A DNA stretch of 64,000 nt from Macrostomum lignano (Eukaryota): NCBI GenBank assembly GCA_002269645.1, contig NIVC01000024.1:682001-746000 (forward strand). The letters run 5' to 3'. This document shows, in pieces, positions 6,967-28,920 of this stretch; the stretch's first letter is position 1; each line of letters opens with the position of its first letter. The notes under the pieces were generated by a model. The model was not told the origin of the DNA and searched no databases. It saw only the letters and a list, made by a program, of their open reading frames with translations. Both the position numbers and the translations under genes were made by a program.

Positions 6967-6989
6967 CTACTCCTGATTGGATGCCTCAT
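6967..6989 (-). CDS. Predicted last coding exon of the RIIa/IQ gene (..DEASNQE*)
   Basis: Strong acceptor ctctgtttgtttcag; phase 1 matches the weak donor at 8106. Confidence 0.5.
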
Positions 6990-9900
6990 CTGAAACAAAC
7001 AGAGCAGAGTTCCGGCTTTAATGCAACATGTCATTGTGATGTTTGATCTTCCAAAGCTACATTAGCAATAAAATGAGGATCTGGGAGACTGGCCCAGCAA
7101 CTGAGGATCTGGGAGGCTGGCCCAGCAACTGAGGATCTGGGAGGCTGGCCCAGCAACTGAGGATCTGGGAGGCTGGCCCAGCAACTGAGGATCTGGGAGG
7201 CTGGCCCAGCAACTGAGGATCTGGGAGGCTGGCCCAGCAACTGAGGATCTGGGAGGCTGGCCCAGCAACTGAGGATCTGGGAGGCTGGCCCAGCAGCTGA
7301 GGATCTGGGAGGCTGGCCCAGCAGCTGAGGATCTGGGAGGCTGGCCCAGCAACTGAGGATCTGGGAGGCTGGCCCAGCAACTGAGGATCTGGGAGGCTGG
7401 CCCAGCAACTGCGGATCTGGGAGGCTGGTGGCCCAGCAACTGAGGATCTGGGAGGCTGGCCCAGCAACTGAGGATCTGGGAGGCTGGCCCAGCAACTGCG
7501 GATCTGGGAGGCTGGCCCAGCAACTGCGGATCTGGGAGGCTGGCCCAGCAACTGCGGATCTGGGAGGCTGGCCCAGCAACTGAGGATCTGGGAGGCTGGC
7601 CCAGCAACTGAGGATCTGGGAGGCTGGCCCAGCAACTGAGGATCTGGGAGGCTGGCCCAGCAACTGAGGATCTGGGAGGCTGGTACAGCAACTGAGGATC
7701 TGGGAGGCTGGCCCAGCAACTGAGGATCTGGGAGGCTGGCCCAGCAGCTGAGGATCTGGGAGGCTGGCTCAGCAACTGAGGATCTGTAGGCTAGGCGGTT
7801 GATAAAAACGCTTATAAATTACGCTTGCGAATAAAACAGTAGGACACCTGAAAAGCAACATTGCCAAGCTAATAAATAGAGCCTGTGACAAGAAAGCTGT
7901 GCGATAATTTAAAAAGGCTCTACTAACTACAGGTAAAATCATCTAGGCTAAGTGTAGGAATGAATCCGTATACAATATTGACAATCGATTTTGAAATTGG
8001 AGTGAGCATTTTTCAATCGATCGTTTAATCAATCAAAGGTGTCACAATTCACAAGACCAAACAGCAAACTAGAATTGGGCAGTTCCGCACTGGCTCAGTA
8101 CAGACCGGTAGTCTGGGTCGTCAGTGCGGCCTCAGCGGTGTTGCGCTGCTGCTTGCGCAACTCAGCAGCCTCCTTGCGCGCCTGCATGCCTATTGGCGAC
8201 GAGAATTGGTCGGGTACAGCGTAGGAGGTACATTAGTAATGTCGTATTAATATCAGGGGGAATAGAAAAGAACGCCTAACAAAGCGTGTGCACTATCATA
8301 GGAGCGCATTTGTATACGCGCGCACCGGTTTAACCGGACATTTTGTAGGTGCGCGCTGTCATAAGCGAAGCGCGCACAGTTTCTAAGAATAGGCACAGGA
8401 GCGCACAGTTTCTAAGAATTGGCACAGGAGCGCACATTTTCTAAGAATAGGCACAGGAGCGCACATTTTCTAAGAATTGGCACAGGAGCGCACATTTTCT
8501 AAGAATTGGCACAGGAGCGCACATTTTCTAAGAATTGGCACAGGAGCGCACATTTTCTAAGAATTGGCACAGGAGCGCACAATTTCTAAGAATAGGCACA
8601 GGAGCGCACATTTTAAAGAAGTGACACGTGAGACCACTGGGGTGTCAGAGTACGTGTGAACTAAATGAACTTTAGTTGTACTACCTACTGGAATACAAAT
8701 AATGTTTTTGTAACTTTAAAAAATGTCATCTTTGTTAGTCCCTTGCGCTAAAACTCATGACCGTGTCCTTAAAAAAATCAAAGCGGGACGGTTAAGCTAC
8801 TTAGTTAGTAGTATACGGAGCTTAGTTAATCCACCGTTAGTTTCTGACATGTATAAATACAAAAAACCGCAATTCAGACTAACTGCCAAGATGCTTTACC
8901 TCGAAATCCGGCCTGAATTTTGACAGCTGCCTTCGCGTTCGACTTGTCCTTATCTGCCGCATCAGCTTGGTAATTCTAAAGAAATTTAAAGAAAAAAAAT
9001 GAAGATTAATATACTACTCTATTTATAATATTTCAGTACTATCTGCTATGATAATGATTGCATACAATTATTTACAGCGACACAAAAAACAACACTTAAG
9101 ACTAAAAAGCTGCTAGATTCAGAAACTTTTGCCGCAAGCATTTCAGTTTAGTGATCTGAGCATCAAACTTCATTATAGTTAGTGAAGTAAAAAAAATGAT
9201 GCAACCAAACAAGCAACAAGCACATTAATACGCTCGTAAGGTCTAGGTGAAGGCAAAGATGCTAGACTAACCAGATATGTCACTCGCAATTAAAGTTGTG
9301 AAAAAAACAGAGCCTGTACTCGTCTTTCAGTAGTTTGTCTGCGCAGTGTCACTTAAATTTACTGTGGCAGCTAAAATCTCTTTTACTTACTCGGGATTTG
9401 CGGCCTCAGAAGCATATGGGGTTAAGAATGAACAACAAGAATTTAAGAGTCACTTTGAAGATGTACAAAAGTGAACGCAAGAGGGAGACGAAACTGCGTC
9501 TAGGGGGGGGGGGCAGGCCCAATCTAGCCCAGCCAATGAGAGAGCAGTAAGGAGAGAGAAAGTAAGACGGACGAAACTCAGCCTAGGGGGAACGTACAAG
9601 GTCCAATCTAGCTCAGCCAATGAGAGAGCAGTAAAGAAAGAGGTAAAAGTCAGATACAGACATGGCCGGGGCTAGGCTAGGGCGCCACCCCTTTTCTCTT
9701 GCCCGCTATGCACATTGGGTTTTTTGTTTGCAATTGACGCATTTTAAGCGACATTGTCACACAACCGGCGGGAGACATTACTGCTCAGTCCGCCGACTCC
9801 TCTGAGCAGGCACACAAGCGCGCGGATACGTACGCAGTCATACGCACAGGCACACACTCACACAGCAGTGTACAGCGGCCCAAACTTTATTTATCGTTGG

Positions 9901-12900
9901 GCATGTACACTTCACTGTGTCTTGGGGGGTTCGCCCTCAAGGCCGTTAATTACACGAGCAGAGCTAAGCCGAGATTTCAATTAAGCCCCAAATTAATGTG
10001 ACTGCAATAAAGGAGCGCCGAGCTAGACCATAGACGAATAAAACAGAGGATGCTAATTTAATGGGCCTGCTAGTAGAAAGCCAGCAAAGATTAAATATTT
10101 TGTAAAAAATTAATATAATATTTCATTTCATTATTAAGGCATAAAAACAAAAAACGCTAATTTTGCTACTGAAAAAGAAGTAGATGAGCGCATTTCTTTG
10201 CGCGTGCATCATCAAATTATCCTGTTATTTCTAGTATCTGTAGATGAAGAGACTAAAATAAGGTTTGTTCAACTACCGACAACATTAAGTGTATTGCAGA
10301 ATAGAAGGCGCTTATTCTGATTAAACAAAAAATTAATTTAGACGAGGAATTTGACACAGGAACAATGATCAGGACCAGGGAATTTTGCTGATGAAAAGTG
10401 AGAACTCTCTAAGAGTCGGGTGTGAACCCAAGAGTCTCGATTCCACTGATCGTCTTCATAATATCTATAGTAACTATATTACCAAATCGTTTTAAACAGT
10501 CTGAAGTTTTTAATCTTGATACTTGATACTCGAGAGTTTATAATGTCTAGATCCTGTCAAGAGTTCACCGACCTTCATCACGAAACTTATTATACTAACT
10601 ATACTAGCAAAATATTAAATTTAAAGTTTAAAACTGCATGAACACGTTACCGATGCTGCGCAGTTGGAGCCGCTTGAGTAATAAGAATAATAAGCTATCA
10701 AATGCTTCACTAGCCCAGACTTGCACTCGTCCATTTTAGATACACATTCGGGTTTGAATAAGATCCAATGGTTGCGGGATCAGCTATCAGTAAAGAAAAT
10801 ACTCCCCTTTTATACTAATCAAGCTAAGAGAGCTCAGGATAGGAAAATGTTTCCCGATTTTATCCAACCATCAATAGCTCGGAAGCTCGGGATCTCACAG
10901 GTCCCTTATTTCTCTCAAATAGGCGCGGACATCCAATGCAAATTCAGAGCATAAGGAACAGGCATTGAAAGCGGCCGGTCAAGCGTTCACAGGGCGGTGT
11001 CCCGTTAGGCTTTAGGGGCTGGGCAGTTTCTCCAGGCAAAAGAGGCACAATTCTATACACTTTCGATAGAGCAGAATGAAAACCCACTAACTATTGAGCA
11101 GTGCTGCGCTTTGAGAAAAATTGTTGAGGAAAACATGTGGCAATTAACCTGGCGTCTTTGTGTATTAAAGCTGATTTAATTTCTTAGGTATGAACTTTTC
11201 CATTTCGGCTGGACATCCATTAATATATAAATAACCGAATCCGTGCGACTGTAGCTTAGAGATTAGAGCGTCGGACTCAAGACTTGGAAGGTCGGGGGTT
11301 CGATTCCCGATCCCATTGCAACCATTTTTGTCCTTGATCAAGACAACTAGCATTAGCTAGCAAAGCTGCGGCTGAGCTGTCGGTTGACATATGACCCAAG
11401 TTGGACTGGTGCAACCAAGTATTACTATTATTATTAAATATCCGAAAGAACATGCAAAAACATTGGTTAGCCCATGAAAAGTGCATAAATTTAAACATAT
11501 AACAGGAAATCCGACTGATGGAAAGGTAAACCAGAAAGAGGAAGCCAAGCGTCATAGGTTAGAGATATATAATATAACCCTGACAATCCACGACTACACC
11601 CCTCTTACGGAGGCAGAAGCCACACCCAGAAAATGTACTCTTACATAAAAAGCTAAATTTTTACGTCATAGAGGAGAGCTAATGGATAATAAGGGCGAAT
11701 ATGCTAAAAGTATCCTGGAGTGACCACCAACAAGGCGTAGGTGTTTAACTCAACAAAGCGCAATGTTAAGATTGTGCCCAAAAACAAAAAACCATAACAA
11801 CAAAGCAGAAACAAAAGGCAAGAAACTGAAAACAAGTTCGAATACTGAGTATAATGCCAAGATAACATACGCCAATCTAACTAAAAACGGCAAACGAAAA
11901 AAGCGTTGAAATTGCATGCAACGAAAAAATGATGCATGCATTTTCAACACAAGCATCCGGCTATTCTACAGACACTGAATCTGCACCTTGTCAGCATTGT
12001 CCTCGGGCGCTGCTTCCACAGATTCTCTCTGCTGCGATTCGTCGATTTGTTCCGCTTTCTTCTTCTTCTTCTTGTTTTTCTTTTTCTTTTTCTTGTCTTT
12101 CTGGGGCTCCTCGGCTGTGATTCCTTCTGCTACTGGATCACCCTCTACATTCTCGGTGGTCTCAGGAACTGCTGCTCCACCTTGATGTTGCCCGTCAGTA
12201 TGTTCCTCCTTCCACTCACCAACAACCTCAGGAGATTGAACAGGATCATCTAGATTCTGAGCTACAACAGCAGCAGGCTCCTCCTCACGCTTCTCATCAC
12301 CAACCGAAGGTGCAGGCTCCTCCTCACGCTTCTCATCACCAACCGAAGGTGCAGGCTCCTCCTCACGCTTCTCATCACCAACCGAAGGTGCAGGCTCCTC
12401 CTCACGCTTCTCATCACCAACCGAAGGTGCAGGCTCCTCCTCACGCTTCTCATCACCAACCAAAGGTGCAGGCTCCTCCTCACGCTTCTCATCACCAACC
12501 GAAGGTGCTGGCTCCTCCTCACGCTTCTCATCTACAACAGCGGGTGCAGGCTCCTTCTCACGCTTCTCATCAACAACCGAAGGTGCAGGCTCTTCCTTAG
12601 AAGGTGCAGGCTCCTCCTCACGCTTCTCGTCAACAACCGAAGGTGCAGGCTCCTCCTCACGCTTCTCATCACCAACCGAAGGTGCAAGCTCCTCCTCACG
12701 CTTCTCATCTACAACAGCGGGTGCAGGCTCCTTCTCACGCTTCTCATCAACAACCGAAGGTGCAGGCTCTTCCTTAGAAGGTGCAGGCTCCTCCTCACGC
12801 TTCTCGTCAACAACCGAAGGTGCAGGCTCCTCCTCACGCTTCTCGTCAACAACCGAAGGTGCAGGCTCCTCCTCACGCTTCTCATCACCAACCGAAGTTG

Positions 12901-15900
12901 CAGGCTCCTCCTCACGCTTCTCATCACCAACCGAAGGTGCAGGCTCCTCCTCACGCTTCTCATCACCAACCAAAGGTGCAGGCTCCTCCTCACGCTTCTC
13001 ATCACCAACCGAAGGTGCAGGCTCCTCCTCACGCTTCTCATCAACAACAGCGGGTGCAGGCTCCCCCTCACGCTTCTCATCAACAACCGAAGGCGCAGGC
13101 TCCTCCTCACGCTTCTCATCACCAACCGAAGGTGCTGGCTCCTCCTCACGGTTCTCATCAACAACAGCGGGTGCAGGCTCCTCCTCACGCTTCTCATCAA
13201 CAACCGAAGGCGCAGGCTCCTCCTCACGCTTCTCATCTACAACCGAAGGTGCAGGCTCCTCCTCACGGTTCTCATCAACAACCGAAGGTGCAGGCTCCTC
13301 CTCATGCTTCTCATTAACAACAGCGGGTGCAGGCTCCTCCTCACGCTTCTCATCAACAACCGAAGGTGCAGGCTCCCCCTCACGCTTCTCATCAACAACC
13401 GAAGGTGCAGGCTCCTCCTCACGCTTCTCATCAACAACAGCGGGTGCAGGCTCCCCCTCACGCTTCTCATCAACAACCGAAGGTGCAGGCTCCTCCTCAC
13501 GCTTCTCATCAACAACAGCGGGTGCAGGCTCCTCCTCACGCTTCTCATCAAAAAAAGCGGGTGCAGGCTCCTCCTCACGGTTCTCATCAACAACAGCGGG
13601 TGCAGGCTCCTCCTCACGCTTCTCATCAAAAGCATCCTTAATATTCGTATCTCTTTGATTACTAATCTCCCCACCCAAATCGCATGCTTTTGCTGAGTTC
13701 AAACAATCAAACTGTTCAGTCTGTTGTGAGAGACCGTCAGCTGACTCGGCTGAACTCGGATTGGCAGCAACAGGTGGCGGCTTCAAAGTGAATCAGGGCG
13801 GGAAAAGTTCAAACAATAGAGTATTATGTAGTTGCAAATTGTGATGGTAAAGTACAAGTGTACAAGTGTACAAGTGTACAAGAAAGTTGGGGACCCTTTT
13901 AAATGGGCTCGGAATACTAACAAGCAGTTAGCACTAAACATGAAAGTAAATTATGAAAGAGTATCTATTGAATTCTGACTAGACTTCAAATGCACAGGCT
14001 TCAATAACGAAAACTAAACTCACCTCATTAGAAATTTGCTCAGTATTGTTTGCGTCTTCATCATCCTGAAGTGGAGCAGAATCAACAGGCTCTTCTTGGA
14101 CAGAGTCGCCATTGACAGGTTCTGTTGTCTTTGACAATGCGGCAGTTTCAGCAGTGGTAGCAACAGTTTCGCCAGCAGTTTCATTGGCAGCTTCATTGCC
14201 GACAGCTTCAGTAGCGGTAGTTTCTACAGCAACGGAATCGGCAGCGGCAGCTTCGGCAGCGGCAGTTTCAGTGGCGGCAGCTTCGTTGGCGGCAGCTTCG
14301 GCAGCAGCAGCTTCAGCGGCGGCAGCTTCGGAAGCAGCAGCTTCAGCGGCGGCAGCTTCGGAAGCAGCAGCTTCAGCGGCGGCAGCTTCGGCAGCAGCGG
14401 CTTCGGCGGCGGCAGCTTCGGCAGCAGCAGCTTCAGCGGCGGCAGCTTCGGAAGCAGCGGCTTCGGCGGCGGCAGCTTCGGAAGCAGCGGCTTCGGCGGC
14501 GGCAGCTTCGGAAGCAGCGGCTTCGGCGGCGGCAGCTTCGGCAGCAGCAGCTTCCTTGGCGGCAGCTTCGGCAGCAGCAGCTTCAGCGGCGGCAGCTTCT
14601 TTTTTCTTGGCTTCTTCGATACGCTGAAGAAGTAAAAACACGATATAAACACGATTAAAATTCGTAATATGCTACTTCTAATATAAGTAATGAAAGTAGA
14701 GCGCTATAAATTGAAATTCTTGCCTTCTGCTCCTCTTGCTTCTTCTTGAATTCAACCCGAGCACGGTGGCCTTTGAAGCCGGCTTGGATTTTAGCGGCCG
14801 CATCCTCTTTCTGCTGCTGCGTCGGCCCTTCAATGATTAGCTGCACAATGGGAGTTTGAGAGAGAGCGATGAATAATCCGATTATTAATTTATTAATAAT
14901 AATTCATTAAAGATTGCAAAACTGCGTGGGAAAGAGAACTTTAAAGAAAAAAATCAGTCTATTGCGAAAAAAATTGCGCACATAACGCAACTTTACTAGC
15001 ATTTTATAAGTAATAAAATGACTAAATGCTGAAGCTCAATGCAAACTTTAACTTTTCCATTTTTTAAATGAGAAAAAAACACGATAAACGACTTGTGCGC
15101 GCAAGACAGTTAAAACAGTTCACGCGTCTGCAACTTGAATCAGAAGCCGGGTTGTCACTTGTCACAGAGGAACTGCGCGTCTTTTAAGAAGCCCTACTTC
15201 GAGGACTTCAAAAGAACGGAGGAACGAAGTGTCCTGTCTACCCATTGTAGAGGGTAGCAGTGGCGCCCTACGTTTATTAGTCATAGATAATGGGGGGGTA
15301 GCAGTGGCGCTCCACTTCAGTCATAGATAATTGGGGGTAGCAGTGGCGCTCCACTTCAGTCATAGATAATTGGGGGTAGCAGTGGCGCTCCACTTTAGTC
15401 ATAGATAATTGGGGGTAGCAGTGGCGCTCCACTTCAGTCATAGATAATTGGGGGGTAGCAATGGTGCCCTACATTCATTAGTCATAGATAATTGGGGGGT
15501 AGCAATGGTGCCCTACATTCATTAGTCATAGATAATTGGGGGGTAGCAATGGTGCCCTACATTCATTAGTCATAGATAATTGGGGGTAGTAGTGACGCTC
15601 CACTTTAGTCATAGATAATTGGGGGTAGCAGTAGTGCTCCACTTCAGTCATAGATAATTGGGGGGTAGCAATTGTGCCCTACATTCATTAGTCATAGATA
15701 ATTGGGGGTAGTAGTGACGCTCCACTTCAGTCATAGATAATTGGGGGTAGCAGTGGCGCTCCACTTCAGTCATAGATAATTGGGGGTAGCAGTGGCGCTC
15801 CACTTCAGTCATAGATAATTGGGGGTAGCAGTGGCGCTCCACTTCAGTCATAGATAATTGGGGGTAGCAGTGGCGCTCCACTTCAGTCATAGATAATTGA

Positions 15901-18900
15901 GGGTAGCAGTGATGCCCCACCTAGTCAGCCGCCCTGCTGCTAGCTAAATTGCCTGAATCCGAAGTAATTAATCGTTACATAAAACATTTCCCAAGCGAAC
16001 CTGCATTCGCTCCTCCCGATCGTGACACTCTTTGTGCGCCTCCTCCTCTCTTATTTTGCGCTCGTGAAACCAATTAGAAAATTTCACGGGCGACACAACG
16101 GTGGACGGCGGCGAGAACTGCCTGGGTAAGCTTCTGGCATTGGCCAAGAAGCCGGGACTAAGAGGCAGCTTGGCCGGCGGCAGGGCCTGAACGCGCAGCG
16201 GCGACGGGCGGGTCGGCTTCGGTGGAGCTGACAAAGGCGGCGAAGTCGGCGACGACGAATCGGTGGCGTCGCCGCGCTCCGAGTCCTGGACTTCGCCATT
16301 GGCAGCAGACGCTGGCCTCGGTGACAGATACTGCTGCTTCAGCGTGTTCCATCTGTCGTTGTAGCTGTCTCTGTCGTAGCGTTTGAGAAAGTCGTAGCGA
16401 CCAAGTGTGGCCGCTTTGCGCACGCCAATAGAACCCGGCTGTTGTTGTTGCTGCTGTTGCTGTTGTTTCGCCACTGGCGCTTCCTGGTGCAAACTCTGCG
16501 CTCTTGCTACTGTTATTGTTTCAGTTACAGGAGCCGGCTCAGCGTTGGAATCTGCTTTTGGAGCAGCAACGGCAACTTGTTGTTGCGGTTTGCTATTATT
16601 AGTCGAAGCTGCTGCAGATGCCGACTGCGGCTGAGGCTTTGCAGGTGTCTCCTGATCGTCGCCAGCTCCTTTTTGTGCCCGATCGATCGGCTGTTTGGAG
16701 TCGTGCTTTGTTTTCTTTTTTCGACGTCCAAAGCAGCCCAACATTTTAATTTTATTTTTTCACTAGGCTTGTAATGTAACTATTTAGTATTTGAACTGAC
16801 GCTGCAAGCAGTTGTTGCAATTGCAATAGATAGGCAAGCGCCGCCTTTGACAAATCTTTCTAGTGGAAAATGCGGTGCCAGAATGAATCGGTTATTCAGA
16901 GAAAGAGAGAGAGAGAGCTTGCCTTCTCTTCAGTTTTGTTAAGTGTACGCGCACACAGACAGGAGTCACCCCTCTCCAACTCTATTATTAGTGCTTTGTA
17001 TAAAGAGGAATAAGGGGGGTTGGAGCTTTTGGGGTTTGTGTTGGGACCCTCTCTACCCCGAGGTTTCTCTCTCTCTGTTCTCTGCAACTAAAGGGACCCC
17101 CACGGGAGACGAATGGTTTATTCAGGCCCGGTCTGCGTACATTGCTTAATAAACTTGTCTAAGAGTGGGGGTGGGTGCAATGGGGTGGGGGTCGGGTATG
17201 AACACTGGGGGCCTCTAGCGCCCTCCAGTCAGTCCCTCCAATTAAAATATGCAGAATTCCTCTCCTTTACGGTCAGTTTAACCAACCAAACCACTTAATG
17301 TTAAACAGGCATAAAATTAACTGAGTTCAACCGTTATGTTACAATTTTAATAAAACTCATTAGTTCGTATTATTCCAGAGTGATTGATACCCTATTGCTT
17401 TCTGCTGTTTTTTTGTGTTTCGCCCCTCAGACTTCATGTACATGTGGCTATTAAAGCTCAGCTACTGCTACTGTAATTGTAATACTGAGATCTGCAAAAT
17501 TGAGTAAACATTCAACAGTTCACAAAAACAAGAGTCTTGGAGACAAGGTCTGAAGTCTCAGCTAGAAAGAAATAAAGAAAAATATAGTGTCTAGTGGGCC
17601 TTAAGCTGCCCGCCCCATAGATAATTTGTAAGTCCAAATCCAGTCGTAAACGCCGCCAGAAAACCTCTTCACACGCGAAACAGTTTAGCAGCATTGTGGT
17701 ATCGGGGGCTAATCTGATTTATTAGATAAGAAATAAATAGCTAAGCACAAGCACCACCCTCACTCTCAAACCCTGATAAACACGACGCATCTGCTGTTCC
17801 AGAGACGCGAGAGTTAAGGGTGGGATAGAGGGGGTCTCAGCAACGCTCGACAGGCCGCACAAAACAATCGCAATCGCAAGAATTCGAACAGAAATCTAAG
17901 ACAGACAGGCGCGTTTCCGTCTTGCACTTGGGGCCGCAGAGTGTTCAGTGTTTCCTTAACTTGATTATTTCACCAAACCTCCAAGCCAGTCCACAATGCA
18001 CACTTGCCCTCAACCAGAAACGTTACACGACTCTCTGCCTTCCTGTTTCTGCACACGACGCAGTTCGATAGCAAAGCAAATGGAAAACCAAGAAGAGATC
18101 GGGGCAGTAAGAGAAAGGGGGGGGGGGGTGAAATCTAGAGTCAAAGGTTCGAGTGGCATTGGCGCAGTAAAGCCAACCGACCGCCAATGTTACCAAGCGT
18201 CAAAGTAGCATGAAGCATTAGGCTCCATTTGAGCTCCGAACAAATAGCCGAATGTGTGGATGACGCGTGTCACTTTATGAAAAGCATGAAACCGCAACAT
18301 AGCCGGTTCAGACTTCTGATTAGTCAGATATGTACTGCCTTCTGTACGAGCGCATGACACACAAAATATCTGCACACTTCCTTCTTCACGGCACTACATG
18401 TAAACTTGCAAAAACACCGTGCGTAGTGTACGACAACTCAATATAAACATTTGACAACAATATCTCGTAATCTCGTAATAAAAGCCAGAAATCCTATCCA
18501 TTGAAATTACAGATTTAATCCTGACTGATAGGTAGGAGCTTAGCCATGGATTTTCTATTTTCCATTTCCAGGGGCGCCAGCACCAGGGGCGCCAGCACCA
18601 GGGGCGCCAGCACCAGGGGCGCCAGCACCAGGGGCGCCAGCACCAGGGGCGCCAGCACCAGGGGCGCCAGCACCAGGGGCGCCAGCACCAGGGGCGCCAG
18701 CACCAGGGGCGCCAGCACCAGGGGCGCCAGCACCAGGGGCGCCAGCACCAGGGGCGCCAGCACCAGGGGCGCCAGCACCAGGGGCGCCAGCACCAGGGGC
18801 GCCAGCACCAGGGGCGCCAGCACCAGGGGCGCCAGCACCAGGGGCGCCAGCACCAGGGGCGCCAGCACCAGGGGCGCCAGCACCAGGGGCGCCAGCACCA

Positions 18901-21900
18901 GGGGCGCCAGCACCAGGGGCGCCAGCACCAGGGGCGCCAGCACCAGGGGCGCCAGCACCAGGGGCGCCAGCACCAGGGGCGCCAGCACCTGCTTGGCTAG
19001 CGCCAAGGGCCCCAAAGCTGCTGCAAGTGGTGCCACACTCGTATGCATTTTCAAAGTCATCCATAGTCCCTTTAATCCCCAACTTGGCTACGCCCCTGCC
19101 GATAGTAATCCTGGTATTTATCTTGCCAAAATGCCGGATTTAGAGGCCAAATCATGCGGATCCCGGGAATGAATGAATGCCTGGTATGATGCTATGCCAG
19201 CATGTCTTGACCAAAATGATCCAAAGCTACGCTAAACCCCATAGTTCTGTGGAGTTTTGTTTTCCAAGACTGCTGCAGCTACTTGCGACTAAGTCCAAGG
19301 CTGAAGCCAGCACGTCACTCAACATTAGCACCTCCATGGGTATAGGAAATTGCCAGTGCAATGAAAATGAAAATGGCAACAAAGACGAACTCTAAGGCAC
19401 TATGAAGGCTACCCATCGAGAAGAGAGAAAGGCGAATGGAGACAAATCACATCGTATTGTACAGTTACGACTGTGCATCGCTAATCATTGCAGTAGTCTG
19501 ATTCTCGCGCCACGACCCCTAAAATTCGCCAAGATTTGTCGCGCCAGCCCCCAAGGCACACAGAGTGTACATGCCTGCCTGACGATTAGGAAGTCAAAAG
19601 GCCGCTGTACGAGCTACATCCTGTGTGAGCGTGTGTATGAGTGCGTGCCTGCATACAGAATTGGCGTGCTTGCATGTGCCCAGGAGGTTGCTTCTTTTGC
19701 TAATCTGCTACTCCACTAATCGGAAAAAAACAAATTAAACCCACTAGTCACGAAGCATAGACAAATTATAAGGAAATAAATGCTGATTGAACATGCACAA
19801 AAAGTAGTATGATAGTAGTATGTTCAAGGACAACATCGAGTTTTGGCTATGAAATTTGAACTGACTGAATTTACTTCGTTATTTTTTATAACTGTTCTGT
19901 ATAACTAAAAGTACATTTGTTTAGGTTTTCTAGCATAAGACTTTACGTTAAGTCTCCATAATCAGAAAACCATGCTAGCGAATGCTGGAAACAGACAGCG
20001 GTTTATGCCTAATAGCTCGTACACAACCACAAACACATTGAAATCAGCGAGTAAAGCCAGGGTAATAAAAGTACATACTACAACGGCTGTACTACTAAAG
20101 AGTGTGTAGCTACAGACTAATCAAGCAAGCGCACTTCCTTATTATCGTTCGGTCTCCCCCAAACACTGTAGACGCGGAAATTTCACTTAGGCACTGATGG
20201 GCGCGTATCGGAGATTTTTGCAGCTAAAAAAAAGTTTGCCTTAAAACACGCGAAAACATCGGGACGAGGATTGCGGAAAATTTCCCACAGTGAAGATGCA
20301 GAGTGGATACTGATTAGGGAAACAACACTTACCGCTTCATCTGCGGCGAGACTGGAATCTTTAACGCTAGAATCAGTGTCGACTGGAGGTGGGTCAGAAG
20401 CAGACAGCGGTAGTTCAGAGGTGCACCCCATCGACAGAGGAATGTTGTTGCCTTCCAACTTGTCAGTCGAAGCTGTCTCCGCCACAAAATTGGCTCCATT
20501 AGACGGACTTGGTCCCTGGGCCTCTGGGAACACTTTCACTGCAGAATTATCAGACCCAGCGCATGCGCTGTCTGCACTTTCCTCCAAGTCAATTTGTCCA
20601 TAGGTTTCCTTGGGCGCGGCAATCTTCGATTTGTCTTTCTCTGCACAAAAGCTTTCGTCGCCAAGTGCAGACGAAACGTCAGCCAATCTGTCAGTTGGCT
20701 CGTGTCCTATTGCTGTATCGTCTTGTCCAAATGCTTCATCACTGCCTTGGCAACGGTTTAAGTCTGATTCAGATGACCGAGTTGTGTTGGAAACATCCGC
20801 TATCAAAAGTTCATTGCCTAGTTTTTCTTGGTCTTTTAATCCCGAATTTGGTGTATTCGAGTTAACTGTCGACGCATTATTCAACTCAGTACTATTGGAT
20901 ACAAGCTGCTGTAACCCCAGGTTGTCAGAAATTTGATGCAGCTCTGATCTCTCCTCAGTAGCTCTTGGTTCGGTTTTTCTCGCAATGGGGCTTCCCACAA
21001 TGTTTTGCGCGCTGGCAGTCTCTGTTTGCTCAGCAGCGGTGCTGTCAGCTACGGACTGCTGCTCTGCTTCGGTGCTATGCTGACCTGCAACTGTGCTGTC
21101 AGCTACGGACTGCTGCTCTGCTTCGGTGCTATGCTGACCTGCAACTGTGCTGTCAGCTACGGACTGCTGCTCTGCTTCGGTGCTATGCTGACCTGCAACT
21201 GTGCTGTCAGCTACGGACTGCTGCTCTGCTTCGGTGCTATGCTGACCTGCAACTGTGCTGTCAGCTACGGACTGCTGCTCTGCTTCGGTGCTATGCTGAC
21301 CTGCAACTGTGCTGTCAGCTACGGACTGCTGCTCTGCTTCGGTGCTATGCTGACCTGCAACTGTGCTGTCAGCTAATGGCTGATGACGTGTAGCTGTGCT
21401 GTCAGCTGATGGCTGCTGACGTGTAGCTGTGCTGTCAGCTGATGGCTGCTGATCTGCAACTGTGCTGTCAGCTGATGGCTGCTGATCTGTAGCTGTGCTG
21501 TCAGCTGATGGCTGCTGATCTTTAGCTGTGCTGTCAGCTACGGGTTGCTGCTCTGCTTCAGTGCTGTCAGCTACGGGTTGCTGCTCTGTTTCAGTGCTGT
21601 CAGCTACGGGTTGCTGCTCTGTTTCAGTGCTGTCAGCTACGTTTTGCTGCTCTTCGTCATAGCTTTTACTTGCGACCACATCACTGTTCGAAATTGTCAG
21701 ACTCTTATCTTTAGGAATTGCAACAACATCTGGAGTCAAAGCTCTAACCTGTAGCATTAAACCAGCCATATCTTGATCATACACTTCAGTATCTGCCTCA
21801 GGCTCCAAATTGCCTTCATCAGATTGCGGAAGCGCGGGAAAGTCGCTAATTTCAGCGTCCGATGCTTCTCCATCAGCAACAGTATCGACTTCAAGAGGAC

Positions 21901-24900
21901 TGACCATCTCGAATTCATCCTCAGATGAAATAGGAGATACAATTTCAGCGGTTTCGGGATCATGTTTTTTCGAAGTATCCTCCTTTTGGCTGGGCGGTTC
22001 AGAGGTTGTAGACTTTTCTTCTGTGGGGCAAGCAACGACTTTTGGGAAATCATCTTTTTCAGAGCAGGCTTTTCGCTGCAGGGCGTCTGCATCAACAGTA
22101 TCCATGGTAGTAGTATTGGGGTCAATTTTAGCTTTTTGACATTCAGAAGTATTATTATCAGCATCTCCAGTTGGAGTTGGTAGTTCATCGCATTCTAACA
22201 CGTCGTCACGATTCGAGTCTGAACGTTGAGAAAGTTTTAGTTTTTTCGAGGAACTTCTAGATGATATTTCCACGGGTGGCCTTGGATGTTCCACTTGATT
22301 ATCAGAGCTTTCAGAGGCTTCTGCTTGGGCTTCTGAAGTATTATCTGTTGTTGTTTCTGTCTCTATTGCAATTACATCTTTATTCGTTGCAAGTAGGGCC
22401 TCATCCAAGGGTCTTCCGAATTGTGACATAGGCGTCTCAGCAATCGTATGAGCAGAGGTAGCTGGCATCACAGCCTGAATAGCACTCTCAGTGGTGCTAT
22501 AATTAGATGGCGGATTGTCGGACTTACTGAAGGCACCAGGCGTAGCTTTGACAGCTGCTTTGGAGGGAGAAGATTTAGCCGAAGTAGCGTCGCCCCATTG
22601 CAAGTCGATTGCATATTTGGACTCGTCGTTAAGCAACTCCCGCCTTAGCTTCTTCTTTAAACTTGGGTCTTTTGTGATGAGCCCTTTTGTATTTGTACGG
22701 CTCTCTGACGCGACAACCGATGAACTGGTCGGATTTGTTAGTCCAAAATTTGAACTGCAGCTCACCTGCTGATGCTGTGCAACGTTGCCATAATATCTCC
22801 TGTCGGGGAATCTGCTTGGCACCTGAAGGCGGTTAGCGGGCCCAACAGCTGCCTTCTTTCTGGGCTTCCCAGGGGGCCGAAGGTCCATGACAACGTCGTC
22901 GAAGATGCGGTCAAGCGAACGGTATGACTGTTCCTCTCCGCCTGCCGGTGCAATAGCGCTGTCGATGTTGCGCAGGTCCAGCGAATCCGGCAACTGGTCT
23001 AGACCGCCAACCTCGAGACAGTCGCGGTCGAGCTCCGAGCCGATGCTTGATTCTTCAACGAACCTCAGCGTGTCAAATTGATCGCTCCGACCGACTAATA
23101 AATCGGCGGCATCGATCAGATTGCTCAACGAGCCGTCCGGTGGCGAAGCTGACGAATCGGACTCTTCGCTACGTCCGCCAAGTGTGCCTTCGTCATCTGA
23201 GTCATCATCGACTTCGACTTGCTCCGGAAGCTGGGCTGGCTGCTCTGCTGTTGATAAGCGCCGTGTGGCCGTCTCTGCTTGGTCCAACTCCTCTGCCGGT
23301 GCGTCTAGCAGCTCGGGCGCGGAGAAACTGGCCCGAATGCCGGAGCCCTCGCTGACACCGGGGCCATCACCGCTGGCTCTCCGCTTCCTACGCAACTGAA
23401 CTGGCGGATCCAAAGCTGAGCCGCCTGGCGCATCTGATGCCCGCTGCAACTGTGGTCGGTCTGGCGGTCCTGACGGCTGGCTTTGAGAAAGACGGTGTTG
23501 ACTCTGCTGCGAGGTTGATCGGCGAATGCCAAGCAGACTACCGATGCCTTTGAAGAAAGACTGCATGTCTGCCCTGCAGGCCGTATAGGGACAGATTCTA
23601 GCGGGAAAGACTTTCGACTGGACGGTGTTAAACTGTTATGTTCCAACCAAATTTAGGAGCCCGACTGACGTCAAGATCCAAATTTCAAACCTTGGGGTGC
23701 CACTCGGAATGCGTGTTTATTGGATGGGAGTGGGCGAAAAGCGTGTGGAGTCTAATCAGGGTAAGAGATCAGAGCGGCTCGTCTAGCCGGAGCACTGCAG
23801 GGAGCGGACGGCAAGGCTTAAACCGCGCAGACAGCTTTCTTTAATTCCGCTCTTATTACTATAGTCGTATAGTACTATACTACTACTAAGGCAGTTGCGT
23901 CTTAAAGACAGAGGCTTAGTGCGGCTTCAGATCTAGCCAAGCAGCCCCTCGTTCTCCTGCTTTTGCCAGCCAGGTTTTGGGGTGCAATCAGAAAGGAGAG
24001 AGTGGAAGGTACGCGACAGGAGAAGGAAGCTGAATAGCAGAGGATGAAGGAAATGCGGGTGGATGCGGGGAGGAATGAGGGGCCCTAGCCCTCTCAGCAG
24101 GGGATGTTGTGATTGGAAAGCGAATGAAGGATACTTGCAGCATCTCGCCCTCTCCATCTGGACCCGACCCTGGCCCAGTCTGTTGTCCGGTGAAACTCGC
24201 TCCCGGCCAGCTTTTTGGCTCCAGCAAAAGTCAGCTCTGTTGGGCGCGCAGCTCCGACATATGCTGCGCAGATCCTCCGGACCTGCCTCCATGCAGCGGT
24301 GGCGCCCCAGCAACTGCGGAGACCCTCCTGATCGGCAGCGCATAGCGACCACCATCTCCCTCCTTCATTTTGGGGCTGTCAAGGTCTTTGAAAAACACAG
24401 GATGAAAATTCGAAGTGTGAATATGAGGTCTTAATTCTGTGCATAACTTTTCAGCCACCTTGTCAGGCAGACATTCCATTTTTTTAGTCTAAGAATTCAA
24501 GTCCATTCGACTGACCGAGGTTTGAATTCCTCCTGGCACTGCAAAAGGATTAGCTATGAAGTAGAATACTAAATCAATGCCCTAAAACTCGAGCATATTC
24601 AGATTGCCGCTGCAGTTTGACACCAAGCTGTGTATACAATGCCAGGCAAAGCGATAAAGATTATCAGGGCGAATTTGGCTTACGTACCCTTTTGTTCGCT
24701 GCTGCTGGCGATGCTGCGGAATCCTCATCAGCAGCAGCAGCGGCTCTGGCCTCATCATTTACAGTCGGGCCATTTCTGAAGCGGTACGACGGGGAGAGAA
24801 ATTGTTTTTCAGCCTGACAGTTCCAACTTCACTGCTGCCTCGCAATAAAATCATAATAAAAGCAGACGAATTCATCGAACTTCGCGCATAATATAACATT

Positions 24901-27900
24901 ATTTCTTGCATTATAATGCATGCGGTAATTTTTGGCGGTAGAAGCGTCTGCAAGTACGTGCACTTGCAGTGCTACCACGGCATTGATATTAATTCAATAT
25001 TCCATCACGTAGTCTAATAATCATAGCCTAGCAGCAGTGGAGCAGTATAGAGAATACAGCATTTCTGAAGTGGAATGCAGTCAGATGCTTTTGCTTCTGC
25101 TGCTGCGGAGTTTTAAGCAGAAAAAACAACAGCAATTTTTTGGCGTTGAAAGACGGCGAAGACAGGCGGGCAAGGCTTCCTTCTCCCATCCTTCCGACTC
25201 GAGCCAAGAATCCCCCTGCGCAGATGTTTCATCCCAAAATACTTGAATTTACTCGCCACCCACTCTCACTCGCTCTCAGCCTCTGCTTGACCAACGCTTA
25301 AAGATTTTTATCCTCGCATTCGAACTCCTTAGGAAGTTGGTCGATCAATAAACAGTGCTTCATTCAAGACTGTCTGCTGGCTTATCGAATAATTTTATCT
25401 ATGATAGTTGTTGCGTTGTCAGTGGGTGGCGCAGTTAGCTGCTGCTTTTAGGCGGGGTTGCTATACCACGACATACAGGTAAAAGCCGGAGCGCCAGAAA
25501 AATATGACGGCTTTTAAGAATAAACAGCCTGACGGCTTGTGACCATCCAATTAGCATTAAATCAGCATCGAAAGTAACCCCAGCTATATAACAAAAAGTA
25601 ACGGTTGGTCGTAAATCTCTATTGTAAAATGCTGTGCAAAACAGGAGTACTGCAATAAATTATCCGATGTATATGAATGATAATTTTCCAATATTGTACG
25701 CTAATTACAGACCATTTTTATCCAATTGTAAATTAATTAAATCAGGCTATCTCGTGCTATTGATGGAGACTGCATGGGTTTTACAGAAACTTACTTGTTT
25801 ATTATCAATGAAATGAAAATGAATGACAGTTCTATTAACTTTTGCGCCTCTATATTTATAGTTAGCTCATTTAACTATTGGATGATTTATTAAGAAAGGT
25901 GCGATTCGTTAATATCATTTTTTTATTCGAGTGTAACTAGATACGTGTAAATTATAGAAAGGACTTGTCTGTATGAGTTAGCGCATAAGCTTAACAAATC
26001 CTGCACACTCCATGGAGATGTTGCCATAGAGATAACCAATGCTGCACACTCCATGGAGATGTTGCCATAGAGATAACCAATCCTGCACACTCCATGGAGA
26101 TGTTGCCATAGAGATAACAAATCCTGCACACTCCATGGAGATGTTGCCATAGAGATAACCAATCCTGCACACTCCATGGAGATGTTGCCATAGAGATAGC
26201 CAATCCTGTACACTCTGGGGAGATGTTGCCATAGAGATAACCAATCCTGTACACTCCATGGAGATGTTGCCATAGAGATAGCCAATCCTGTACACTCTGG
26301 GGAGATGTTGCCATAGAGATAACCAATCCTGCACACTCCATGGAGATGTTGCCATAGAGATAACCAATCCTGCACACTCTGGGGAGATGTTGCCATAGAG
26401 ATAGCCAATCCTGTACACTCTGGGGAGATGTTGCCATAGAGATAACCAATCCTGCACACTCTGGGGAGATGTTGCCATAGACATAACCAATCCTGTACAC
26501 TCTGGGGAAATGTTGCCATAGACATAACCAATCCTACAAACTCTGTGGAAATGTTGCCATAGACATAACCAATCATGCACACTCTATGGAGACGTTGCCA
26601 TAGACATAACCTGTATAACCAATCATGCACACTCTGGGGAGATGTTGCCATAGACATAACCAATTGTGCACACTCCATGGAGATGTTGCCATAGACAACC
26701 AATCCTGTACACTCCATGGAGATTTTGCCATAGACATAACCAATTGTGCACACTCCGTGGAGATGTTACCATAGACACAACCAATCCATAATGAATTTTG
26801 ACACTCAAAAGTTTCAAGTTAAAATTTTATTTTCAGGAGCTTCAGAGGAAATAAATATAGCAATAAAATATTCACGCACTAAAAGCACTATTTCAGTAGG
26901 AGATATTGCCCTAAAGCCAGTTCTAAGTTACGACAGTTAAAAGTACACTTTTAAGACACCTCCTTTTTCAAGAAGAACCAACGTTCGTGTCTGAATTGGT
27001 AGCCGCGTCATCAGAAAAAAATGCAGGTGCCAAGGATAGCCAATACTCTTCTCTCCCCATGGACCTCGCATTTTTCTTTTTCTAAAAGACGCTGCGGAAC
27101 ACAGACATAGGAAAAGATTTCCAGACTGTTGTGCAATCTTGGGACCACAATCCCATCTTAGGCTTGGGGGCAAGGACCATGTCTTTGAACTAATTTTCTA
27201 CCCTTGGAGCTTATAACACCCTACGGCGCGGGGATCAAGAGACAACAGATGGATTTTCGAATTCCATAGGCTCTTTAAGGCTGCAGTGTAACATTTCTAG
27301 AGCTTTGACGCAGTAAAAAGCCAGACAGTATGACCAGGGAATATTCTGAATGAAGCCAAGTACGTCTGGCATGTATTTAGAATGTGCAGGAGCTGCGCAC
27401 ACTGTTCACCTAGATACCAATACAGTCTGCAAATGCATGCGTAAATGCAGTAAAAAGAACAGTTAAACAAAATCTTTCGCCTACACCATACTACTCGTTC
27501 AAATTAAGGTAAGTAGAAAGAAAATGCACAGCTAGATGCTTTGACAGACATCGAAAATGTCCGGAAATGTTCAAATCTGGGACTCTAGAGGCGATGGGAA
27601 AGCTGAGCACTCAGTGCCAGAGCTGAGAGGTAAGCATGCATTATTCATCAGGATGCAGTCCGCAGCTTCCCTCACCCAGGAGCCTGAGTAGCCCTGTGGT
27701 AGATGCGACCGACTCTCGCGTGACGCGTGACACTGTACAACCCTAAGCTCAAAAGTCGGTGGAATGGGCAGAACTGCCTCAGCACTGGTTGTGGGATGAT
27801 TTCGCCGAAGGCGTTGCGCCAGGGTGCCCGCAGTCATCCTGAATATATTTGCTTTTACTTTTACTTTTATCCCTCACCCAGACTGGCGTCTTCGAAGCAG

Positions 27901-28083
27901 GTCTTCGAAGTGAGTCGCTCCGAACTTATAAATATCCGCTGGTCGCTGACGCATAACCTCCAGAGCGAAGCCTTCAAGCAACGCCTGGAAGCCATCTGGA
28001 GGCGGCGGTAGCTTTATTGGGCGCTTTGAATGTCGACGCTTGCGCGGTCGCTCGGTCGCCGTCTCGGTAGTGTTGAGGCTTGA
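6967..28083 (-). CDS. Multi-exon RIIa-domain / IQ-motif protein (Sp17/ropporin-type docking domain plus neuromodulin-like IQ motifs). Predicted exons: 28083-27878, 24775-24688, 14840-14724, 14623-14024, 13780-11987, 8975-8900, 8189-8106, 6989-6967. Alternative N-terminal exons: 23566-20333 and 16744-16001
   Basis: RIIa motif PDGFQALLEGFALEVMRQRPADIYKFGATHFEDLL. IQ1 AAAKIQAGFKGHRAR. IQ2 AAVKIQAGFRG|MQARKE is joined across a phase-1 intron. Listed junctions have AG acceptors and GT (one GC) donors with consistent phases. The start of the RIIa isoform lies upstream and was not located. Confidence 0.75.
7073..7790. repeat. 28-bp minisatellite (GAGGATCTGGGAGGCTGGCCCAGCAACT), intronic
   Basis: About 25 tandem units; explains three overlapping minus-strand ORFs. 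Confidence 0.97.
8106..8189 (-). CDS. Exon carrying the second half of IQ motif 2 (GMQARKEAAELRKQQRNTAEAALTTQTT)
   Basis: Acceptor ccaatag|GC ATG completes the Gly codon begun by G|gtaaag at 8900. Confidence 0.75.
8369..8620. repeat. 29-bp minisatellite (AGGAGCGCACATTTTCTAAGAATTGGCAC), intronic
   Basis: About 8 tandem units read directly. Confidence 0.92.
8900..8975 (-). CDS. Exon carrying the first half of IQ motif 2 (NYQADAADKDKSNAKAAVKIQAGFRG)
   Basis: tttctttag acceptor, G|gtaaag donor, IQxxFRG motif. Not in the ORF track. Confidence 0.8.
9740..10006 (-). mobile_element. Headless copy of the SINE at 43451-43780
   Basis: Collinear similarity with 43451-43716, e.g. the shared CTGAGCAGGCACACAAGCGCGCGGATACGTACGCAG. 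Confidence 0.75.
11248..11318 (+). pseudogene. tRNA-like sequence (SINE head or tRNA pseudogene)
   Basis: A-box-like TAGCTTAGAG and B-box GGTTCGATTCCC at tRNA spacing; the anticodon and acceptor stems do not pair well. Confidence 0.5.
11987..13780 (-). CDS. Large acidic exon of the RIIa/IQ gene built from a 39-bp coding minisatellite (EEPAPSVVDEKRE)n
   Basis: 1794-nt open phase-0/phase-0 exon (ttgaag|CCG ... AAG|gtgcag). Non-repetitive acidic flanks and a KKKKKKNKKKKKK basic tract. Confidence 0.7.
14024..14623 (-). CDS. Ala/Glu-rich exon ((AAAEA/AAASE)n) of the RIIa/IQ gene
   Basis: ttcttcag|CGT acceptor and GAG|gtgagt donor; 600 nt, phase 0/0. Confidence 0.8.
14724..14840 (-). CDS. IQ motif 1 exon (LIIEGPTQQQKEDAAAKIQAGFKGHRARVEFKKKQEEQK)
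   Basis: gtgcag| acceptor; canonical IQxxxxGxxxR; predicted GC donor AAG|gcaaga. Confidence 0.85.
15280..15915. repeat. 39-bp minisatellite with ~43-bp variant units (AGTCATAGATAATTGGGGGTAGCAGTGGCGCTCCACTTC), intronic
   Basis: Tandem units read directly. Confidence 0.95.
16001..16744 (-). CDS. Putative alternative first coding exon of the IQ gene (MLGCFGRRKKK...REERMQ)
   Basis: AAAATG start, 744-nt open frame, CAG|gttcgc phase-0 donor compatible with the IQ exon at 14840. Confidence 0.65.
18568..18989. repeat. Perfect 15-bp minisatellite (CCAGGGGCGCCAGCA)x28
   Basis: No variant units seen; the unit is stop-free, which explains the ORFs on both strands. Confidence 0.97.
20333..23566 (-). 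CDS. Very large (1078-codon) acidic, probably disordered exon; putative alternative first exon of the IQ gene (MQSFFKGIGSLL...DEA)
   Basis: 3.2-kb mostly non-repetitive open frame with ATG start and a strong phase-0 donor GCG|gtaagt. Contains 54-bp and 33-bp coding repeats at ~21035-21645. Confidence 0.7.
24688..24775 (-). CDS. Linker exon of the RIIa isoform (NGPTVNDEARAAAAADEDSAASPAAANKR)
   Basis: cttcag|A phase-2 acceptor matches GG|gtgagg of the RIIa exon; AGG|gtacgt donor. Confidence 0.65.
25995..26790. repeat. 41-bp minisatellite (CCAATCCTGCACACTCCATGGAGATGTTGCCATAGAGATAA), intronic
   Basis: About 19 tandem units; explains ORFs 25923-26817. Confidence 0.95.
27878..28083 (-). CDS. RIIa dimerisation/docking-domain exon
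   Basis: Resembles the Sp17/ropporin/PKA-RII N-terminal motif (P.GF..LLEG...EV.R..P..I..F.A.YFE.LL); tcttgcag acceptor and gtgagg donor. Confidence 0.85.
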
Positions 28084-28271
28084 CTGCAAGATTTATGAAT
28101 GGAATTGGTAATTTAGGAAAATAGTTATAGAATGGGTCAAGGTTATGGGCAATGACGTTAGTAAATTAGTTAGGATTACTTAGCCTTCAGCGGGCTTTGA
28201 GCACTGTCACATATCATGATTTCTAGTTGCCCCTAAAAATGCGTCAAAATGAGTATCAAAGGCGACGCTTA

Positions 28272-28920
28272 GGGTGTCAGGAGAGGAGGTACTCAGGGTG
28301 TCAGGAGGGGCGCTACTCAGGGTGTCAGGAGTGGAGATGCTCAGGGTGTCAGGAGTGGAGATACTCAGGGTGTCAGGAGGGGCGCTACTCAGGGTGTCAC
28401 GAGGGGCGATACTCAGGGTGTCAGGAGGGGGGATACTCAGGGTGTCAGGAGGGGCGCTACTCAGGGTGTCAGGAGGGGCGCTACTCAGGGTGTCAGGAGG
28501 GGCGCTACTCAGGGTGTCAGGAGGGGCGCTACTCAGGGTGTCAGGAGGGGCGCTACTCAGGGTGTCAGGAGGGGGGATACTCAGGGTGTCAGGAGAGGAG
28601 ATACTCAGGGTGTCAGGAGAGGAGATACTCAGGGTGTCAGGAGAGGAGATACTCAGGGTGTCAGGAGAGGAGATACTCAGGGTGTCAGGAGAGGAGATAT
28701 TCAGGGTGTCAGGAGGGGCGATACTCAGGGTGTCAGGAGTGGAGATACTCAGGGTGTCAGGAGTGGTGATGCTCAGAGTGTCAGAAGTGGAGATACTCAG
28801 GGTGTCAGGAGTGGAGATGCTCAGGGTGTCAGGAGGGGCGCTACTCAGGGTGTCAGGACGGGAGATACTCAGGGTGTCAGGAGTGGAGATACTCAGGGTG
28901 TCAGGAGTGGTGATACTCAG
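28272..28920. repeat. 24-bp minisatellite (ACTCAGGGTGTCAGGAGTGGAGAT and variants)
   Basis: About 27 tandem units; explains ORFs 28207-28992. Confidence 0.96.

Follow-up and report, generated by a model that had tools for sequence, protein, structure and literature searches.

Can one IQ exon serve proteins with entirely different N-termini? This question is raised by a locus of the flatworm Macrostomum lignano that lies in a 64,000-nucleotide (nt) stretch of contig NIVC01000024.1 (hereafter the window). Three coding modules are found there upstream of an IQ exon (IQ1): an RIIa exon followed by a linker exon, an acidic exon of 1078 codons (the large exon), and an exon encoding a Cys and polybasic start. 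All features of the locus are on the minus strand. The first-pass annotation had described the three modules as swappable N-termini, directed by alternative promoters, on a shared IQ/acidic-repeat body. Every exon boundary and reading phase that it gave was borne out by the sequence, and both the RIIa and the IQ domain were confirmed above the Pfam cut-offs. Our best explanation, to which we give an even chance, is that a Sp17 (SPA17)-type locus has been combined, in function, with a family of acylated IQ proteins particular to this lineage. On this view, the pair of RIIa and linker exons would be a second 5' end of the gene that begins with the Cys/basic exon, and the two ends would be mutually exclusive.

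The gene from ATG 16744 to the stop at 6967

The gene runs from the ATG at 16744 through IQ1, a GC-AG intron, an Ala/Glu-rich exon and a second IQ exon (IQ2) to a tail ending at 6967 (Table 1). It is represented by BOX15_Mlig019204g1 (P0004 in our comparisons; 481 amino acids (aa), Mlig_3_7 assembly), a transcript-derived GenBank protein with 98 % identity to the 16744-16001 exon used as a query. The junction from 16001 to 14840 is contained in this protein and is supported by its alignment; the further junctions are placed at 14724 to 14623, 14024 to 8975 (a jump of 5 kilobases (kb)) and 8900 to 6989. The protein is encoded at another locus (L001, NIVC01000260.1), which is collinear with the window from about 25800 down to about 240 at about 93 % identity. 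Judged from this collinearity, L001 is a duplicated copy of the window locus. From the linker exon on, L001 has the whole arrangement, and the RIIa exon lies beyond the compared stretch of L001. The M. lignano genome has been described as highly redundant (PMC5730564).

The ATG at 16744 opens 248 codons, which end in phase 0 at CAG/GT (slashes mark splice boundaries). Since the frame is closed by a TGA 18 nt before this ATG, with no AG between the two, the exon must be the first coding exon. It is constrained, with a ratio of nonsynonymous to synonymous substitution rates (dN/dS) of 0.17. Its product starts with MLGCFGRRKKK, has seven Lys or Arg among the first 20 residues, and continues with the family-conserved motifs ATLxRYDFL, DRWxxLKxxYL, SLPRQFSPP and FSxWF. 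The same first-exon module with the same EREEx[RQ] end is found in a Macrostomum family of M(P)FGCFGKRKKK-IQ proteins (BOX15_Mlig000068g2, Mlig005895g1 and Mlig003552g1). The layout of the family is M(P)FGCFG[KR]RKK, the motifs, the EREEx[RQ] end and then KIQAGFKG-type IQ motifs, one to three in the paralogues. By this shared layout the annotated isoform is a member of the Macrostomum acylated-IQ family. The paralogues differ from it in that they are only 33-38 % identical to the window exon and have neither the Ala/Glu exon nor the 13-residue-repeat exon. Upstream of BOX15_Mlig003552g1 (L003, 105-2048), the acylated first-exon module was observed twice more. One of these copies directly precedes three IQ motifs with no intron and may be an intronless or retro-copied member.

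The annotated isoform can also be compared with GAP-43/neuromodulin, neurogranin and Drosophila igloo. It shares with them a short Cys and polybasic N-terminal membrane motif in the first exon, and an AAxKIQAxF+GH-type IQ in the next exon of an otherwise disordered acidic protein. Igloo has isoforms with different N-termini. Unlike the calpacitins, the window protein has a single Cys, no Gly2, and a 248-residue first exon with ATLxRYDFL, SLPRQFSPP and FSxWF, motifs that are not known from calpacitins. Among the proteins P0004-P0011, Pfam Neuromodulin and Neuromodulin_N gave no match at E <= 10; only IQ was found. The description of this N-terminus as GAP-43-like holds as far as the Cys/basic motif and the calpacitin-type IQ are concerned, and does not extend to Pfam neuromodulin homology. 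By analogy, the acylated family would work like GAP-43/neurogranin; it is not a demonstrable member of that class. The Cys/basic form, putatively palmitoylated, would sit on membranes.

IQ1 starts in phase 0 at 14840, directly after tgtgcag. It scores 21.8 bits against a Pfam cut-off of 20.3, and its motif is AAAKIQAGFKGHRAR. A six-frame motif scan of the whole 64 kb detected two IQ motifs, both in this gene. The GC donor after IQ1 is kept in both copies (L001 about 12628-12728). A candidate product retaining this intron (tail ARISIY...) was rejected because the tail is disrupted in L001, as befits an intron. The Ala/Glu-rich exon, with 30-nt repeats, encodes 50 % Ala and a net charge of -38. 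The acidic 13-residue repeats lie in an open reading frame (ORF) of 606 codons (13786-11966, stop at 11966), with a phase-0 acceptor at 13780 (ttgaag/CCG) and a possible phase-0 donor at 11987 (GACAAG/GTGCAG). In the non-repeat flanks of these repeats the few substitutions are mostly synonymous (dN/dS 0.15-0.39). The segment is probably either a cassette, phase 0 at both ends, that can be included or skipped, or else an alternative last exon. The shared body that had been proposed is found in BOX15_Mlig019204g1 from IQ1 through the last exon, except that the acidic-repeat exon is skipped in that protein. A 1-nt length difference in an A-rich poly-Lys run (12045-12095, minus strand; L001 15027-15070) shifts the frame of the last approximately 40 codons of the acidic-repeat ORF. 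The DNA beyond the run is almost identical in both copies, and a homopolymer assembly error is possible.

The RIIa and linker exons and their proposed junction with IQ1

The RIIa domain scored 39.7 bits in Pfam (PF02197) against a cut-off of 22.4. Its best matches among solved structures were the Sp17 chains 9fqr_Ic, 8j07_K and 7my4_A (E 1.5e-11 to 2e-06 for these top three), and the best match to PKA RII was weaker (E 6.9e-06). The entry 7my4 is the crystal structure of SPA17; 9fqr and 8j07 are axoneme structures determined by cryo-EM. On these matches the RIIa domain is of the Sp17 subtype. The significant database relative of the RIIa and linker translation was one M. lignano UniRef cluster. 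Its member A0A1I8GNM2 (98 aa), a UniProt model, is 100 % identical to the window, contains the junction from 27878 to 24775, and extends from the RIIa acceptor, without a Met, to the linker donor, without a stop codon.

The RIIa exon ends in phase 2 at gg/gtgagg. The donor splits a Gly codon, which is completed by the first base of the linker exon, and the linker in turn ends in phase 0 at AGG/GTACGT. Exactly at this donor the two copies differ by a 4-nt indel (AGG/GTACGTAAGC at 24682-24690 of the window, AGG/GTAAGC at about 1416 of L001), and read-through past the donor yields different tails in the window and L001. Because no stop codon is present at the conserved donor and the read-through tails differ between the copies, the linker requires a downstream exon. 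An intron-retention product of the linker (tail VRKPNSP) was rejected, as its tail is disrupted in L001 and the sequence is that of an intron.

The donors at 24688, 20333 and 16001 are all in phase 0 and compatible with IQ1 at 14840, as the first-pass annotation had stated. We built seven spliced combinations (each 5' module on the body, and the linear form discussed below), all of which were open to the stop at 6967. Phase compatibility is weak evidence, since it is expected roughly once in three cases for each donor. The hypothetical RIIa-linker-IQ1 product aligned in one piece with residues 13-134 of Sp17, which comprise its RIIa and IQ (E 1.5e-11). It shares with Sp17/SPA17 (sperm autoantigenic protein 17, R2D2 family) the N-terminal RIIa with its PxGFxxLLEGxxxEVxRxxP signature, and is collinear with it, the AAxKIQAxF+GHxAR IQ standing at about the same distance. 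Sp17 is axonemal or ciliary, binds AKAPs and forms a heterodimer with ROPN1L, and SPA17 is conserved across metazoan phyla (PMC8339350). The window locus differs from Sp17. Two other coding exons separate its RIIa from its IQ, over a distance of 13 kb; an mRNA with both is hypothetical; its RIIa exon has no genomic ATG; and the predicted product, with a long Ala/Glu and acidic tail and a second IQ, measures 370-968 aa against about 150 aa for mammalian Sp17. We slightly favour the junction from 24688 to 14840 on indirect evidence: the Sp17-type RIIa, the collinear alignment, the lack of IQ motifs elsewhere in the window, and a spliced-leader acceptor that would give the RIIa exon its in-frame ATG. 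Whether the gene has at least two alternative N-termini appears evenly balanced.

In M. lignano the spliced leader ends in ATG and is joined at an acceptor motif [T/C]TNCAG (PMC8629364), and leader AUGs of flatworms can initiate translation (PMC9851317). The RIIa exon begins directly after cTTGCAG (motif TTGCAG at 28089-28084), and its first codon continues the leader ATG in frame. In our proposed mechanism, the 35-nt spliced leader would be joined at TTGCAG/TCA, and its terminal ATG would be the in-frame start codon. The same [T/C]TNCAG acceptor, the same lack of an ATG and a frame running directly on from the terminal ATG of the leader characterize the flatworm mRNAs with a leader AUG (Cheng et al. 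2006, cited in PMC9851317); in contrast to those, trans-splicing at 28083 is deduced here from the sequence and a 5'-partial protein model. The RIIa/linker transcript would then skip 9.8 kb to the same IQ1 exon. Its product would have the layout of Sp17: residues 31-66 would form the RIIa, residues 112-131 the IQ, and the long acidic tail would come after them. In this form the protein may dimerise and bind to AKAP-type helices on the scaffolds of axonemes or cilia, perhaps pairing with ROPN1L in a heterodimer. Both this form and the Cys/basic form would carry the same IQ module, which may hold apo-calmodulin.

Exactly one leader-acceptor-like motif lies within 120 nt of the start of each upstream module, conserved in L001, and none at IQ1. 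The motif occurs at a density of 2.45 per kb, at which a stretch of 126 nt would be expected to contain one in about 27 % of cases. The motifs are suggestive either of a trans-splicing choice within one unit or of three independently processed genes. The alternative promoters of the first-pass annotation are not required, because M. lignano trans-splices a leader ending in ATG and each module has an acceptor-like motif.

Several facts weigh against a junction of the RIIa exons with IQ1. We found no transcript, expressed sequence tag or protein model that joins them, and the RIIa models known are all fragments of 98-100 residues. The stretch of the Sp17 alignment that covers the IQ adds nothing independent, because calpacitin-type IQ motifs resemble that of Sp17 anyway; the IQ of neurogranin also matches weakly (E 0.95). 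The linker in the window has a second GT 4 nt downstream of its donor (TAC/GTAAGC), the use of which breaks the frame with IQ1. The linker donor could also reach an acceptor at 16802, giving an RIIa-only protein of 104 residues with a stop after RQFKY (five codons). In its name the annotated gene carries the label g1 within its transcription unit, which hints weakly at a start of that unit at the 16744 exon. Finally, the paralogues have IQ exons of their own with no RIIa upstream within 10 kb (L003, L006) or 4 kb (L002), no large ORF was found upstream of them either, and a transcript contig of another species also has no RIIa exon upstream. It may be, on this comparison, that the IQ exon is native to the acylated family alone.

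The large exon and the rival gene structures

The large ORF extends from the ATG at 23566 to GCG/GTAAGT at 20333 (phase 0); beyond this site it stays open for another 49 codons, up to the stop at 20183. Like the 16744 exon it begins with its own ATG, as had been claimed. Its exon encodes a net charge of -109, and coding tandem repeats with units of 33 and 54 nt occupy 21039-21638. By our own arithmetic, an ORF of 1127 codons is vanishingly unlikely to arise by chance in DNA of about 50 % GC. In L001 the ORF is open and collinear, with expanded repeats (1406 aa). Between the window and L001, dN/dS was 0.31 for 615 N-terminal codons and 0.79 for 222 C-terminal codons. All indels inside the ORF are multiples of three (3, 3, 15, 3, 3, and one in the C-terminal part), whereas the gaps in flanking non-coding DNA are 7, 1, 8, 2, 3, 7, 1, 1, 1, 7 and 3. 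Judged from the comparison of the two copies, the large ORF is certainly a genuine, selected coding sequence.

A word-indexed and a full HMMER search of 1.8 billion representatives gave no homologue of the large exon outside its repeats. The matches were of low complexity only (residues about 570-895), with none to the N-terminal approximately 570 or the C-terminal approximately 180 residues. No annotated protein for the large ORF was present in the protein sets searched. The filtering applied for GenBank discarded alternative and repeat-overlapping transcripts (PMC5730564). For this reason a missing annotation is uninformative either way, and the filtering of repeat overlaps can explain the lack of a protein for the large ORF. 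Exact look-ups covered both full ORFs and six products derived from the window: the acylated form, two versions of the RIIa form (one with the initial Met, one lacking it), and three genomic read-through ORFs. None was found; the control, the annotated isoform as the window's own allele, was also absent, so that this result is uninformative. We found no mention of Mlig019204, SPA17 or Sp17 in the full text and supplements of Macrostomum papers. An AKAP-type amphipathic helix was also sought in the large ORF and rejected, the one motif match (LIDAADLLVGRS) being what chance predicts (1.0 expected from shuffles).

The large exon may be a third alternative 5' exon, a nested independent gene that uses the stop of the ORF, or an internal exon with catgcag/TCT (23560) as its acceptor. 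The second of these belongs to a possible, though less probable, explanation of the whole locus. In this explanation the modules are three separate tandem genes on the same strand, perhaps in one trans-spliced transcription unit: one for a small protein with RIIa alone, one for an acidic orphan with its stop at 20183, and the acylated IQ gene. The phase-0 match would be a coincidence. The distribution of the leader-acceptor-like motifs, present at each module and absent from IQ1, fits such a structure, although at the density given above a match is not rare. About 15 % of M. lignano genes lie in operons (PMC8629364), but the distances between the modules (1.1 kb and 3.6 kb) exceed the 1-kb threshold used for operons in that species (PMC8629364). 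The stand-alone paralogues of the IQ gene and the possible splice from the linker to 16802 would agree with separate genes as well. If the RIIa exons formed a gene of about 100 residues with little beyond RIIa, the product would resemble RIIAD1; the window RIIa matches Sp17 best among the solved structures compared. A Sp17-type RIIa without an IQ, however, would lack a feature that defines Sp17, and immediately downstream, in phase, are the only IQ exons.

For the large ORF, the own ATG and the own stop speak for a separate gene. Because GT[AG]AG occurs three times within the ORF, a donor-like site near its end is unremarkable. In L001, a separate partial gene of 104 aa is annotated inside the repeat of the large ORF, in the same frame; eight reconstructions of it were absent by exact look-up, as was the control, and this result is uninformative. 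On the other side, the composition shifts sharply exactly at the GTAAGT at 20333, and an indel in a T-run after this donor shifts the post-donor tail, whose length differs between the copies. A scan for poly(A) signals was tried as evidence of gene ends and set aside, since the hexamers are scattered everywhere.

We consider it improbable that all three modules serve as mutually exclusive starts joined to IQ1, as the first-pass annotation had proposed. This arrangement agrees with the three phase-0 donors and the three open products, and one of its junctions, 16001 to 14840, is found in BOX15_Mlig019204g1. It also agrees with the selection on the large exon and with the end of the frame-preserving constraint at the donor, in-frame indels lying before it and 1-nt indels after it. 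Against it, no model joins 24688 or 20333 to 14840, leaving two of the three junctions without evidence, and the large ORF is missing from every protein set searched. The junction from 20333 to 14840 on its own is doubtful, and three alternative N-termini together are unlikely.

A single linear transcript, in which the RIIa and linker exons are spliced to the large exon at 23560 and on to IQ1 to encode an RIIa-acidic-IQ protein of about 1446 residues with the acylated exon as the sole alternative start, is very unlikely: the concatenation is open (LINEAR_short, 1446 aa), an AG at 23562-23561 directly follows the large-ORF ATG so that entry at catgcag/TCT keeps the frame in phase 0, and the phase-0 donor at the end of the large ORF would be explained, but the acceptor is purine-rich with a poor polypyrimidine tract, another AG (ctgcag/, 23574) stands 13 nt upstream and its use leads to a stop after 11 codons, RIIa and IQ would be spaced by about 1100 residues, unlike in Sp17, and no supporting model was found in the protein sets searched. 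As a separate observation, the large ORF has its ATG within the sequence CTGCAG GGCAGAC ATGCAG/TCT (23560-23575, minus strand). Leader splicing at the second AG there would put the leader ATG, in frame, in place of the genomic Met-Gln, and leader splicing at the first AG would create an overlapping out-of-frame upstream ORF.

Surroundings of the locus and the meaning of a possible shared IQ exon

Table 1. Coding exons, repeat segment and GC-AG intron of the IQ locus in the window
Feature	Position	Strand	Basis
RIIa exon, Sp17-type docking/dimerisation	27878..28083	-	sequence, Pfam, start of A0A1I8GNM2 (P0003), motif
Linker exon, 88 nt (G-NGPTVNDEARAAAAADEDSAASPAAANKR)	24688..24775	-	sequence, A0A1I8GNM2
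Orphan acidic Ser/Thr-rich coding exon, 1078 codons	20333..23566	-	ORF, L001 comparison, dN/dS
First coding exon of the annotated gene, Cys + polybasic	16001..16744	-	BOX15_Mlig019204g1 (P0004), paralogues, dN/dS, upstream stop
IQ1 exon (LIIEGPTQQQKEDAAAKIQAGFKGHRARVEFKKKQEEQK)	14724..14840	-	Pfam IQ; both junctions in BOX15_Mlig019204g1
GC-AG intron, 100 nt, after IQ1 (AAG/GCAAGA ... CTTCAG)	14624-14723	-	used by the annotated protein
Ala/Glu-rich exon	14024..14623	-	BOX15_Mlig019204g1 alignment
Acidic 13-residue-repeat segment (VVDEKREEEPAPS, about 35 copies)	11987..13780	-	ORF; open in L001
IQ2 exon (NYQADAADKDKSNAKAAVKIQAGFR), phase-1 donor	8900..8975	-	tblastn of BOX15_Mlig019204g1, IQ scan
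Last coding exon, 23 nt (..DEASNQE, stop)	6967..6989	-	sequence, spliced models

Introns and flanks of the locus contain dense minisatellites at 7074-7786, 18568-18989, 25992-26787, 28271-28920, 5153-6386 and 15279-15911, with periods of 28, 15, 41, 24, 19/38 and 39 nt, respectively. The 15-nt array consists of 28 perfect copies. Several of the arrays lack stop codons in at least three frames and so look like ORFs. The apparent ORFs at 7031-7775, which occur in three frames, were rejected as non-coding, since they are formed by the 28-nt minisatellite within the last intron. Elsewhere in the window we found three paralogous single-ORF C-type lectin genes on the minus strand (36507-37265, 56853-57734 and 62136-62942; Pfam Lectin_C, 28-29 bits) with a common conserved C-terminal tail (RHVLYNSKLRACRLLLFTDAQVE). 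On the plus strand there are an ORF for a rhodopsin-family G-protein-coupled receptor (33726-34442; 7tm_1, 61 bits) and the exons of a malonyl-CoA decarboxylase gene (44419-49290; MCD_N and MCD). Between the latter exons lie about 2.3 kb of repeat-derived multi-frame ORFs (45320-47660).

Should the modules prove to be genes of their own, this is an ordinary tandem array, made up of a fragment resembling Sp17, an acidic orphan that evolves fast, and a Macrostomum-specific member of the IQ family. We know of no other example of one IQ exon common to Sp17-type and calpacitin-type starts, and a shared exon, if true, would be a novel variant of the alternative-first-exon design. It is a speculative idea, and we think it very improbable, that the two kinds of start on one IQ exon reflect a common ancestry of both protein classes. 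The IQ motifs of Sp17 and Nrgn are nearly identical. In human, SPA17 and NRGN are presumably on the same strand at 11q24.2. In mouse, the order Esam/Vsig2/Nrgn/Siae/Spa17 still makes Spa17 and Nrgn neighbours (PMC4098794). The flatworm locus could have retained such a condition, or arrived at it again: the 5' exon would decide whether one calmodulin-holding module goes to the axoneme or to the membrane. In vertebrates, under a common ancestry, a duplication of the IQ exon would have split this shared condition between two genes.

The Sp17-type locus fused in function with the acylated family, if true, would offer a testable idea for the likeness of the Sp17 and calpacitin IQ motifs and for their gene neighbourhood in mammals. 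One calmodulin-buffering module would reach two compartments, ciliary or flagellar AKAP scaffolds and the membrane, by the choice of a 5' exon. In an animal that trans-splices, this could be decided by the choice of the leader acceptor rather than of the promoter. The locus would then be a compact natural example of the retargeting of a signalling module.

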